A program made the translations under genes and the position numbers. From positions 1-64,000 of the forward strand of contig JALMLS010000097.1 of assembly GCA_038496445.1 (NCBI GenBank): 64,000 nt of DNA, written 5' to 3'. Below are positions 45,993-51,326 of this stretch, piece after piece. The DNA comes from Trichosphaerium sp. ATCC 40318. Taxonomy: Eukaryota > Protista > Tubulinea. The notes beneath the pieces were generated by a model. It was given only the letters and a program-made list of their open reading frames with translations. It was not told the DNA's origin and ran no database searches. Within the stretch, counting starts at the first letter, position 1; each line of letters opens with the position of its first letter.

Positions 45993-46815
45993 TTAGTAGT
46001 AAGGAATCCAAGTTATACCATATGCCTCAACGTATTCTTTTGTAATAAGGGTTTCATGACTCTCGAGTGTTTTGAGAGAAGTCAAGTGTTTCAAACAATC
46101 GTTTGTAATCGAAGAACAAAAAAAAAGTATCAAATGTTCAAGATTGATCAAATGCTTGAAAACAGAGTCTGTTACTTCAGAACAATTATTCAAACGTAAC
46201 TTCTTGACATTGACCAATGATTTGAGTCCATCATCTGTTATTGATTGTCCTTTGAAAATAGTAACAGTGTGGACATTACCAAGGTGTTCGAACCACCAGT
46301 TTTCTGGGACATTATTGTAATTTCATGTGCGTCTTTGAGTGCCTTTAATCCTTTACCTCTAATATTCGGACAGTTCCATATATTAATTGTGTGTACACCT
46401 CTGAGTGCAGTTAATGAATCATCTGTTATCTTTGTGGAAGCCAAGTCAATGGTGTGAATGGTGTGCTTGCCTCCTTGTACTAATGTAAGGATACCTGAGT
46501 CTGTAATGTTTGATTCTCTCAAACTTATTGACTTAACACCAGAAAGTCAACTCATCATGTGATAGATCCAACCAACTACAATCAATCGTTGTGTTTTTCA
46601 GAAACGGACTGCCTTTGAGAACGCTACATTCTGAGGATTCTTTCAAATTGATTTCATAAACGCCAATTTTATTGCGAATGATGTTATTAATATATGTTAT
46701 TAATCACGTGAGAAACTGTAGATGCGTTAATACGTTGTTTTTTGTTTAAATGGCGTAAAATGAGCGCTAATGTCTCTGGTGTCAAATCGCCATGTGATTT
46801 CTCTTGGTTCGCATG
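45993..46815 (-). pseudogene. F-box + LRR paralog of 39582-40823, frameshifted
   Basis: DLTPETLALILRHL...STVSHVINNI, LKGSPFLKNTTID (cf. LSGSPLLRNTRIS), HTIDLASTKITDDSLTALRGVHTINI; several frame breaks. Confidence 0.75.
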
Positions 46816-47146: not shown

Positions 47147-49337
47147 CTATTTATTAGCAGCATCCGGTTTTAACGATGGTAGAACTGACAGGAGATGTCT
47201 TACAGGTATTGTATCTCCTCGTTCTTCAACAAAGCTTCGAATCAATGTTGAATCTTGGGAGAGGACCCAAGAAGTAAGAGTGTTTCTGATAACAGGGTTA
47301 CATGCCAATAATCCGTATTCAAGAATCTCACTCATTATCTTTATATTTGTTGCACTATGATTAAGGAGATCATTCATCACAAGAGATTGTAAAGAATCTA
47401 TGCAATATTTATCAGAGAACTTTAAGACTTTAAATAGAGTAGCCAAATCAAGATCATGAGGTATTTCATCAAGGTAGACAAAATGAATAAAAATGTTGAT
47501 AATCAAAGGATCTTCATTTAAGGTAATACTATCGTTTTTGTCACCACTTGTCCCAAGTTCTTTAGATAGAATAGCACCTTCAAAGAACGAAGACCGACAC
47601 ATAAGTATAGACTACAGGAAAATAAATATAAAGGAGATAGAGTGTAGTACAGTAATAACAAACCTTGTGACATTTAATACTGTCTTTTCCAGCAACAATG
47701 GTAAAGTCCTGAGTTTCCGATTCGAACAGCTTTTGAAGGGATTCTAGAAGTGAAGTCTTATCTGACACGCATTCTTTACGCTTGTGTTCGCGTATTGCGC
47801 ATATGAGAGCGTTATCTGTGTTGCTTTTAGCATACTGTTCTTGGCTCAATTTAGTCAAGTCTGTTATCAATGTTGACAGCTTTCTTGGAACTATTATTGG
47901 TTGGATTGATGTTGCTAACGTTTATCAGTATTCATTCAAGATATAGTTTTTACTTACGTGGCGAAATATAAGTTTTCTTGTCTATTTGGACCTCTCTTTT
48001 CTCTGGTATTTGTTTTACAAGGTATGGAATGAGGTTTGTATTTTGTTCCATCAAAGAAACAAAAAGAACTTTAATAACACCTCTTGGATTTTCTATTCTT
48101 GAACATAAAACATCGACCATATACATGCCACAATCATAAGCGTTCATTTTTCCTAATGATAAAAAGCTAATAAGTATATAAAATTACAAATAAAAAGGTC
48201 AAAAGGATGTTGTACCTTTGTAATCTGGGAAGAACTCTTTGAATTTTTCTGGATGGTTTTGTATTTCTTGTTCAAAGATGTCAAGCTTTGTCATTACAAG
48301 GATAATAGGAGCAGTGATGAAATTTTGATACTTTGCAATAGTATTGAGAAACATACAGGAGTCTTCAAAGTCATAGGTTGTATGAGAAACGAAATACAAG
48401 TAACTGTTGTTGCGAGTGAGGGAAAAAACTACATAATAAGAAAAAAACAAAAAAAAAAAATGACAGCAGGTGAGGATACCTAATGAGAGATACACAAAAA
48501 AATATGCAGTCAGCACCATAGAAGCTAAGAATTTTGATTTTTTTGCGTTCATGATAGAAACCTATGAAAAAAGAAGTAACAAAAAACAACAATCACAATT
48601 CTGCTGTTACCCACCTGAAGTATCTACTATTTTATATCTGGTACCATCCACAATGTAGATATCTTCTACAACACCAGTGGTTAACGAATGTAGATTAAGA
48701 AGCTGTTCATTGGTCACAAAGAATGCATCAGCAGATTGACAGCAAACTGAAGCAATGTAACTGAAAGTAAAGAACTCAGCATGGAAAATAACAACAGACT
48801 TAACTCACGTTTTTGCATTTGTCTTGAGGGAGAACGGCATAGATTTAGACGTAATAGATGTAATCATGTTCATGAAAGCTTGGTCTTGTTGCAACCTGGG
48901 TCAAAGCCGTTAACCGAAAAATGTTATGAAATAAAGAAGAGTACAGTTTCAATGTGTCAATCCGTTGTTGTGTCCAAAACATTTTGTCGGTTCGAGCCAT
49001 AAAAGAGTTGACAGTATCTTGTGTCGTCTAATATTTATGTGTAAGACGTTACGAAGTACTGTAAATATTGTTTACACTCTCCAGACTCGAGAATTCGGGT
49101 AATTGGGATACACTCCAAAAAAAACTCTGCAAAAACCATAAACCACGTCCATTGTACCAATCACTAAGCCTTATTTTACAAAACAATTTAAAATGCATCA
49201 ATAGCGTTGATTTACCTAAACTCTCTTTGTAAGCAATAAAAACTGCCCATAATACCACAATAGTACCACTCTTGGATGGTCCTAACGGTTCGTTATTGGG
49301 TTGTTTGTATTAGCTGTCACTTACCTACTACTAACGC
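47147..49337 (-). CDS. Divergent G-protein alpha-like domain fused to a C-terminal BTB/POZ domain
   Basis: LVVG|PSKSG|KST; NLHSLTTGVVE; IVDTSG|FYHERKK; ADCIFFCVSL; PIILVMTKLDIF; then LFESETQDFTIVAGKDSIKCHK|VILMCRSSFFEGA...FIHFVY...FSDKYCIDSL. Confidence 0.8.
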
Positions 49338-49420
49338 TTTTTTGGTACAGGAGTCATGATTTTCTGTTTGAAACGCATTTTTGCGTTTTTGTTTCGACCC
49401 TTTGCTTCCCATGCTTTACA

Positions 49421-49516
49421 ACAAATGTTTTTGTTTAGCGAAAACTGAAACAATTCAGTTGTTGTTTAGCGAAAACTGAAACAAATGTTTTTGTTTAGCG
49501 AAAACTAAACAATTCA
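49421..49516. repeat. Three copies of an ~30-bp unit (ttgtttagcgaaaactgaaacaa) just upstream of the G-alpha-BTB start
   Basis: Direct tandem copies visible in the sequence. Confidence 0.85.
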
Positions 49517-50149: not shown

Positions 50150-51326
50150 ATGAAATCCTCAACAGACAATAAAAGCGACAACGGCGAACTTCCTCGAGTA
50201 AAATTAGTAGTATTTGGAGATAGTGCTGTTGGTAAAACAACATTTTACGTGAAAGCTCATTAAATACCTCGTATCTTGCGTCTTCATTCTTTTGAGGGTA
50301 TGTTACACCGTAAGCTAACTTAGACACAGGTAAAACAAGCTTACTGAGCAGAATAGCCTTAAGTACGTCCAGAGTATTCAATCACCAGTAAAAACAGTAC
50401 CAGAGAGGTTTCCGTCGGGTTACACTCCGACAGTATTAGAAAATAATGTGTACGCAGAGCATTGAGGCTTTTATCTCAGTTTTTCTTGTCTCACGTGACC
50501 TGGCTTTAGTATACATTTGGACACTATGTAACTTTTTTTTTCTGTCCTTTAGACTTTACTTATTCTCTTAGGATGCATGTCAACACGTGTGGACACAAGA
50601 TAGAATTAGGTTCGTTGCTTTGTTTATTGTAACTCATGTTGTACCTTATAGGCTTGTGGGATACTGCAGGGCCTGAAAAATACGACAGGATTCGATCTGT
50701 GAGCTACACCAATGCTGATGTAAGCTATAGTTAGTTGTGAAGTATCTGTTGTTAATTCTTTGCTTTCTGTAGAGTGTAGCGATAATTGCTTTCAGTCTCG
50801 TAAACAGGACTAGTTACGAAAATGTATTGACAAAGGTAAGCCACATTGTGCACTTAATTATTGCCACAATTTTTTGTTTAACTCAAGAGTCACTAAGCTA
50901 ATGATCTCGTTTGCGTTGTAAAGTGCTACCCTGAACTTCGATATTATCGCCCAGATGTACCTGTTGTATTGGTTGGTACAAAGCTAGACTTAAGGGAGTT
51001 GCACTCAATGGATAGAGGCCATAAACGCACAGAGAAAGCCATCGCAAGAGAAGAAGGAATACATTTAGCAGAAAAAATTGGTGTATGTACTGCCACATTT
51101 CCGCCCATTGTTCTAAACTTACTCGCTGTGATTTAGGCTCATAGTTATGTTGAAGTGAGTTCAAAAACAGGTGACGGGGCAGAAGAGCGTATGTTTGCAC
51201 CTTAGTCTGAGTACTAAACTAACTATTTTTGTAGTACTATGCCAAGTATCAGAAGCTGGTTGGTTATTCAGCCATCACAAGGGAACAACAGAAAATAAAT
51301 CCGATAAAACATGTGCTGTCATGTGA
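50150..51326 (+). CDS. Atypical Rac/Rho-family GTPase, copy 2
   Basis: VKLVVFGDSAVG|[49 protein letters not shown] (CAVM*); same intron layout as copy 1. Confidence 0.85.

Follow-up and report, generated by a model that had tools for sequence, protein, structure and literature searches.

We examined a 64,000-nucleotide stretch of the genome of the protist Trichosphaerium sp. ATCC 40318 (positions 1 to 64,000 of contig JALMLS010000097.1, assembly GCA_038496445.1; hereafter the window), and focus here on a gene on its minus strand that extends from position 49412 to 47147. This gene very probably encodes a single fused protein, in which an altered alpha subunit of a heterotrimeric G protein (G-alpha) is followed by a BTB domain and a helical tail. 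The region around it is intron-rich and eukaryotic, with a guanine-cytosine content of 34-39%. From the three minus frames and from comparison with paralogues of the same genome, we derived a model of 11 exons and 579 codons, in which the frame is open across the full length and all 10 introns run from GT to AG and measure 43-76 nucleotides (nt). A purpose-written spliced protein-to-DNA aligner recovered the same exons on the window, and the same layout at 10 paralogous loci. The start codon lies at 49412, 75 nt upstream of the limit (49337) given in the first-pass annotation, which a model had made from the letters of this DNA, and a stop codon precedes it by two codons. Searches were run on single exons, and joined gene models were used in local scripts only. 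Judging from its sequence, the gene is presumably expressed.

The indirect evidence for a fusion is strong and includes the junction between the two halves. An intron had been proposed near 47910-47957; it is real (GTAAGT..TTAG), and its exact span is 47957-47915. As this intron is only 43 nt long, a terminator and a promoter could not fit between the G-alpha and BTB halves. Exon 10, which follows it, is free of Met codons, and three codons ahead of it the frame closes. The position and phase of the intron and the residues on both of its flanks are conserved in 10 paralogues, as is the motif PTSIQPIIVP that comes just after it. Ten paralogues have intron positions and phases in common, and eight of them are open throughout. 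Across the 70.3-Mb assembly, exon 11 matches 19 loci, 16 of which carry a Pfam G-alpha match on the same strand 0.6-1.4 kb upstream. Since there are about 68 G-alpha loci in 70 Mb, fewer than 0.001 such associations are expected by chance per locus. These observations argue with high confidence for one fused gene.

The coding sequence is also under constraint. Against five paralogues of about 50% identity, the ratio of nonsynonymous to synonymous substitution rates (dN/dS, Nei-Gojobori) was 0.40-0.44 for the G-alpha part, 0.24-0.40 for the linker, and 0.27-0.43 for the BTB domain plus tail, with the BTB part being the more constrained one in most of these deep comparisons. A second copy of the gene, located on contig C348 and 97-100% identical, differs by 16 substitutions over the 1740 bases of exon, where indels are absent, and by 8 substitutions and all three indels over the 528 bases of intron. 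It could nevertheless be argued that no functional fusion is made from this locus: a G-alpha cut short behind a retained intron 9 and some second product might arise from it separately, or it might be a pseudogene too young to have lost its frame, within a family that is decaying. If intron 9 stayed in the transcript, a stop would come two codons later, recent paralogue pairs display relaxed constraint (dN/dS 0.5-1.0), and two family copies, those on contigs C206 and C18, are truncated. However, all 11 exons are open and flanked by canonical splice sites, exon 10 has no start codon, eight paralogues preserve the 11-exon layout intact while dN/dS stays well under 1 in all parts, and the indels relative to the C348 copy are confined to introns. 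We consider this explanation highly improbable.

The N-terminal half was assigned to G-alpha from profile comparisons. Exon 8 alone matched the Pfam G-alpha family PF00503 (E 1.3e-9) with 38.1 bits over profile positions 226-280, which falls short of the cut-off of 48.8 for the whole protein, and the Pfam G-alpha scan of the same genome returned the gene at C99:48205-48399. As a reference, we used a canonical G-alpha of this genome (contig C56, L020), which reads GAGQSGKST, SRVKTTG, DVGGQ, NKAD, and TCAV at its motifs. The profile of the family aligned to this reference with a probability of 99.3% (hhalign, local script; E 5e-20, residues 24-270, 234 columns), and the alignment runs colinearly from the P-loop across the helical insert and both switches to the G4 motif. 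A profile of the exon 6 equivalents aligned to it over switches I and II with a probability of 82% (E 1e-5), placing the His of HSLTTG on the Arg of SRVKTTG. The 123 residues between GKST and HSLTTG are colinear with the helical part of this reference, which points to an insert of the size of a helical domain. The profile of exon 9 gave no significant match to the canonical G-alpha or to the open reading frame of a distant family member, L013, which is described below.

The motifs of a heterotrimeric G-alpha occur in order but the catalytic residues have been replaced. In switch I the Arg finger has become His, with the Mg-binding Thr retained, and in switch II, which is split by an intron and reads DTSGF across it, Phe occupies the place of the catalytic Gln while DxxG is retained. 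The G4 motif reads TKLD, so that the Asn of NKxD is replaced by Thr and its Lys and Asp are kept. All three changes had been reported in the first-pass annotation and are confirmed here at the positions listed in Table 1, the first of them by the profile alignment. In addition, G5 is degenerate (VSLM instead of TCAT), G1 has a Ser at the position equivalent to Gly12 of Ras, and switch II has one residue inserted in comparison with the paralogues and lacks a Trp that they keep. The protein is devoid of both the Arg and the Gln expected of the G-alpha family, and its motifs suggest that it is most probably deficient in hydrolysis. The earlier label of pseudo-GTPase fits this loss, but it goes too far for nucleotide binding, as the protein retains the P-loop, the Mg-binding Thr, DxxG, and K-x-D. 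With the nucleotide- and Mg-binding motifs of G1, G3, and G4 all present, we lean towards the view that the module binds guanine nucleotide.

Loss of catalytic residues extends to the relatives of this gene. Within its clade of 11 loci, the catalytic Gln is missing in every member, the position being held by Phe, Ala, or Thr. The Arg finger is kept only by L002 and L003 (RIRTTG), both of which also have DVGG and ERKKW. Only L007 is more degenerate than the window gene and its C348 twin, both of which belong to the most derived members. It is conceivable that the G-alpha module still works as a switch, with a dedicated GTPase-activating protein (GAP) providing in trans the catalytic residues that it lacks, and that the resulting GTP/GDP cycle regulates the BTB domain. 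There is a precedent in RapGAP, which supplies an Asn to Rap, a GTPase with Thr instead of Gln, and the retention of all nucleotide- and Mg-binding elements, together with the Arg finger and DVGG of L002 and L003 next to Ala or Thr at the Gln position, would suit such a mechanism. The copy in the window, however, lacks Arg and Gln alike and displays the Ser at the Gly12 equivalent and the insertion in switch II, and no candidate GAP was identified. A switch completed in trans is decidedly unlikely for this protein.

The N-terminal end required revision on two points, as the first-pass annotation had described G1 as altered and had stated that an N-terminal lipidation helix was absent. The frame extends upstream to the start MGSKGSKQKRKN (MGSKGSKQKRK), which displays Gly2 and Ser6 as in myristoylated proteins, followed by the basic stretch KQKRK. 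The pattern MG-x-x-x-S/T with subsequent Lys-rich residues is conserved in paralogues (MGNKSTK, MGNFKSK, MGNSKSK), so a lack of lipidation is unsupported, and a putative lipid anchor is present on the basis of this motif match. The helix itself is short, with 25 residues ahead of the beta-1 strand compared to 30 in the C56 reference. As for G1, half of the P-loop is encoded by a 15-nt microexon. Once this is included, the P-loop reads GPSKSGKST, in agreement with the canonical GxxxxGKS/T. A conserved 15-nt segment between AG and GT was found in all paralogues inspected by eye and restores GxxxxGKS/T each time, and in the distant two-BTB clade the same microexon, in the same phase, gives GSAFSGKST. 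The microexon is common to both G-alpha-BTB clades (L001-L013), whereas the canonical G-alpha on C56 has a single-exon P-loop. Skipping of the microexon would preserve the frame while deleting half the P-loop, and it could for this reason act as a splice-controlled switch for the nucleotide-binding site.

The C-terminal half displayed both the profile and the fold of a BTB domain, in line with the in-frame continuation into a BTB domain and helical tail that had been reported before. Exon 11 matched Pfam PF00651 with 23.1 bits against a cut-off of 20.5, over exon residues 2-85. Its AlphaFold2 model, folded with seven paralogues, had a predicted local distance difference test score (pLDDT) of 75.5, rising to 79-89 over exon residues 31-150. 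The best 50 Foldseek matches of this model were almost all Cul3 adaptors (SPOP, KBTBD4, gigaxonin, KLHL11, KEAP1, KBTBD2), with probabilities up to 1.00 and template modelling (TM) scores of 0.5-0.59, yet an E of only 0.017. VIA-align gave a Z of 8.4 to residues 217-364 of SPOP, that is, to the BTB plus BACK regions; the ESM-Atlas shape search gave TM scores of 0.60-0.67 to BTB-BACK clusters; and the neighbours found by language-model search carried BTB and BACK_BPM_SPOP. Confident helices at exon residues 90-143 aligned to the BACK region of SPOP, so the model predicts that the BTB core is followed by 3-box/BACK helices. When the exon 11 profile was searched against PDB sequences, nothing meaningful came up. 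The linker encoded by exon 10 has 29 invariant columns among seven paralogues; folded alone, this exon reached a pLDDT of 53.6, which is too low for interpretation.

The resemblance to Cul3 adaptors raises the question of whether this half docks on Cul3. The genome encodes a Cul3 orthologue (C86:193340-196500, L021), an exon of which has no PDB matches other than Cullin-3 chains (E 4e-21). In this Cul3 gene, introns interrupt both of the helices that bind BTB, H2 and H5. Because of these splits no clean prediction of the complex was obtained: exon 11 and the N-terminal exons of Cul3, modelled as three chains, scored 0.07 against a mark of 0.34, a value that speaks neither way. In solved BTB-Cul3 complexes, the phi-x-E motif after helix alpha-3 accounts for the largest buried surface, and the high Cul3 affinity of SPOP is owed to its 3-box/BACK helices (PMC3616122). 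By manual alignment, phi-x-E was not evident in our gene, which reads AILSKELG (SSFFEGAILSKELG), and half of the paralogues read AILSNNLG, with no Glu; this alignment is uncertain because the segment has a low pLDDT in the exon-only model.

A motif that is neither evident nor conserved across the family would be compatible with a BTB half that only oligomerises or scaffolds and does not bind Cul3, and many BTB proteins indeed do not. In that case, the product would be a G-alpha-like protein that is dimeric, bound to the membrane, and constitutively loaded, and that signals or sequesters, acting for instance as a sink that takes up G-beta-gamma or receptors, instead of serving as a ubiquitin-ligase adaptor. 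Nevertheless, the nearest structures and language-model neighbours consistently belong to the Cul3-adaptor BTB-BACK classes, 3-box/BACK helices included, and the BTB part is the more constrained one in most deep comparisons. We regard the scaffold as unlikely, although it deserves to be taken seriously. A Cul3 adaptor function of the BTB-BACK half is itself put forward tentatively, from the modelled fold and by analogy. The first-pass annotation had considered the protein an analogue of RhoBTB that could ubiquitinate G-alpha partners or toxins that target G-alpha. The G-alpha-BTB layout behind this idea stands, given the domain matches, the 99% profile match, the SPOP-like fold, and the family of paralogues, while the action as a Cul3 adaptor in ubiquitination is a matter of inference. 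Toxins as substrates are unsupported.

Table 1 Exons of the G-alpha-BTB gene and adjoining features in the window
Feature	Position	Strand	Content
Tandem repeat	49420..49512		31-nt unit, 3.2 copies, 86% matches; ends eight bases 5' of the start codon
Exon 1	49325..49412	-	ATG 49412-49410; starts MGSKGSKQKRKN; short N-terminal segment, beta-1 strand ALVV; ends in phase 1
Exon 2	49267..49281	-	15-nt microexon; first half of the P-loop, (G)PSKS(G)
Exon 3	49076..49215	-	GKST of the P-loop, alpha-1, start of helical-domain insert; aligns to canonical G-alpha
Exon 4	48945..49027	-	Helical-domain insert, from alignment to paralogues and canonical G-alpha
Exon 5	48809..48895	-	Helical-domain insert, from alignment to paralogues and canonical G-alpha
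Exon 6	48615..48760	-	Switch I HSLTTG 48690-48673; DTSG of switch II 48624-48615
Exon 7	48480..48561	-	Remainder of switch II, (G)FYHERKKIKI; DTSGF, with Phe, completed at 48561-48557
Exon 8	48216..48403	-	G4 region, TKLD 48291-48280; Pfam PF00503 match
Exon 9	47958..48152	-	C-terminal part of G-alpha, degenerate G5, short alpha-5; ends in phase 1
Intron 9	47915..47957	-	43 nt, GTAAGT..TTAG; predicted to join the G-alpha half to the BTB half
Exon 10	47664..47914	-	Conserved linker of about 68 residues, then first BTB strands (DFTIVAGKDSIKCHK from 47708)
Exon 11, first part	47357..47611	-	Rest of the BTB core; Pfam PF00651 and fold matches
Exon 11, second part	47147..47356	-	BACK/3-box-like helical tail; stop codon 47149-47147
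Adjoining open frame	45993..46522	-	Looks like leucine-rich repeats (..NITDSGILTL..STKITDDSLTAL..)
Adjoining open frame	50898..51200		Looks like an exon of a Rab/Rho-like small GTPase (VGTKLDLRE..)

Some details of the gene model were settled by comparison with the paralogues. The frame of exon 3 was picked by the conservation of QLPEFS.LDS, and in the paralogues L002-L010 the conserved frame after the P-loop reads ..QLPEFSSLES. An early splice model with an ESLGKST P-loop, an ECKQY exon, and a 14-nt mini-exon was ruled out by the same comparison, and the likeness of ECKQY to G-alpha-i proved to be due to chance, as it lies in the wrong reading frame. An alternative acceptor for exon 10, at 47890, was rejected because it would drop eight residues that are conserved in paralogues. 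The tandem repeat upstream of the gene sits in the presumed 5' untranslated region or promoter, and the 400 nt upstream of the gene, repeat included, differ by one base in the C348 copy.

The window gene belongs to a lineage-specific and fast-evolving family of G-alpha-BTB genes with at least 16 loci in this genome, of which it is a real and intact member. Its clade comprises the loci on contigs C99 (the window gene), C348, C45 (two), C13 (two), C513, C26, C194, C206, and C18. A second clade is found on contigs C459, C294, C36, C270, and C217. Its members match G-alpha in Pfam with 57.3 bits on one exon, have a clear BTB domain (E 7e-7), and display a weak additional BTB-like segment ahead of it, a tandem layout like that of RhoBTB. 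The locus on C217 (L013:1884-2315) has an uninterrupted frame of 144 codons that runs from the C-terminal exon of G-alpha (..FICSTLTEF..) into the linker and the apparent start of the first BTB-like segment; Pfam gave no match on this 144-residue frame spanning the G-alpha C-terminus and linker. Many other G-alpha genes of the genome are ordinary and without BTB. Among them are loci with frames of 534-716 amino acids, which had been considered as single-exon G-alpha-BTB genes and were ruled out. In total, Pfam G-alpha matches occur at about 68 separate places in the 70-Mb genome, a very large repertoire. The two paralogues on C13, L007 (C13:470000-473400) and L003 (C13:485700-488700), are 13 kb apart and convergent. 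The synonymous divergence (dS) between them is 0.43 in the G-alpha part, 0.02 in the linker, and 0.16 in the BTB part; a dS that is high in the G-alpha part, near nil in the linker, and low in the BTB part suggests gene conversion of the 3' half.

Based on these findings, we favour a reading in which the gene encodes a fused protein with a membrane-anchored, hydrolysis-crippled G-alpha as recognition module on a Cul3-docking BTB-BACK, and we assign it a probability of roughly 50%. Myristate and the basic residues that follow would anchor the protein to the membrane. The G-alpha module would keep the ability to bind guanine nucleotide and Mg, through GxxxxGKST, the switch I Thr, DxxG, and K-x-D. 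GTP hydrolysis by the normal route should be impossible with His as the Arg finger, Phe for Gln, and Ser at the Gly12 equivalent, and as the normal hydrolysis residues are replaced, the module would not cycle or would cycle very slowly. Meanwhile, the BTB-BACK half would most likely dimerise and dock on the genome's own Cul3. By analogy with RhoBTB and MATH-BTB proteins, the protein could thereby serve a membrane-located Cul3 ligase, either as its substrate receptor or as an adaptor gated by nucleotide. Partners of G-alpha are the candidate substrates, namely G-beta-gamma, receptors, RGS-like proteins, and effectors, and the G-alpha-like head would either present them for ubiquitination or gate the adaptor.

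Several observations weigh against this favoured reading. The degenerate G5 and the Thr in place of the Asn of NKxD mean that nucleotide binding may be weak. The insertion in switch II and the missing Trp mean that the window copy may have lost binding to G-beta-gamma. The state of the phi-x-E position in this gene and its paralogues, the relaxed constraint of recent paralogue pairs, and the truncated copies on C206 and C18 count on the same side.

A bolder version of the favoured reading, which we regard as rather unlikely, is that hydrolysis-dead, membrane-anchored G-alphas became the recognition heads of a diversifying set of Cul3 receptors that remove components of G-protein pathways, and that the microexon could switch the nucleotide site. 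Targets at the membrane might be free G-beta-gamma, as for KCTD5 in animals, or activated receptors. If the favoured reading is correct, parts of the G-protein signalling pathway would be physically tied to the machinery of protein degradation, and the protein would be a natural case of a G-alpha retained for binding and not for switching. The existence of a fast-evolving multigene family and of a microexon in the P-loop offers simple experimental handles.

A full-text literature search found no paper describing a G-alpha-BTB protein. A HMMER search of exon 11 against 1.84 billion representative proteins gave no match at E <= 0.001, and since not even the genome's own open reading frame was recovered, the library contains no close relatives; a 154-residue BTB query alone cannot show that the G-alpha-BTB architecture is absent elsewhere, and more distant cases may exist. 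As far as we found, a heterotrimeric-type G-alpha in the GTPase position of such proteins is undescribed, while GTPase-BTB fusions themselves are known.

Compared to canonical G-alphas (PF00503, such as the gene on C56), the protein has the same order of P-loop, helical insert, switch I, switch II, and G4, as well as the MG start. The canonical proteins keep the Arg finger, the catalytic Gln, the Asn of NKxD, and the TCAT of G5, whereas the window gene replaces all four, has a shorter N-terminal helix, and bears a C-terminal extension of about 240 residues with the BTB domain. The closest match to this extension in fold and by language model is the MATH-BTB class (SPOP, plant BPM), in which the BTB domain is likewise followed by a short BACK/3-box tail. 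In both cases a recognition domain would lie N-terminal to the BTB domain, MATH in one and G-alpha in the other; the phi-x-E contact motif for Cul3 is not evident in the window protein. MATH-BTB families also undergo lineage-specific expansion and fast evolution.

Control of G-protein signalling by Cullin-3-RING ligases exists elsewhere, as KCTD5-Cul3 is a ligase for G-beta-gamma (PMC10348674, PMC11047111). KCTD5 resembles the proposed role of the window gene in that a BTB adaptor brings a heterotrimeric G-protein component to Cul3, but it has a pentameric BTB of the T1 type, an unrelated C-terminal domain, and no G-alpha. Fusions of ARF-family GTPases to BTB or F-box domains are lineage-specific innovations, and the ancestor of G-alpha was itself Arf-like (Vargova et al. 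2021, PMC8358228). These fusions share with our gene the combination of a GTPase of Arf-like lineage with a ubiquitination-linked domain and a taxon-restricted occurrence, but they involve small ARF/ARL domains, and no G-alpha-BTB is included in that study (PMC8358228). The nearest analogues in layout are the RhoBTB proteins (animal RhoBTB1-3 and Dictyostelium RacA), in which a hydrolysis-impaired N-terminal GTPase is followed by one or more BTB domains, and which are documented Cul3 adaptors (PMC13437954 for RhoBTB1). Fusions of this type tie the logic of small GTPases to ubiquitination by Cullin-3. RhoBTB proteins combine a Rho GTPase with two BTB domains, whereas the window gene combines a G-alpha with helical insert, a single BTB domain, and a myristoylation-type anchor; the likeness is one of layout, with the sequence relationship limited to the shared superfamilies.

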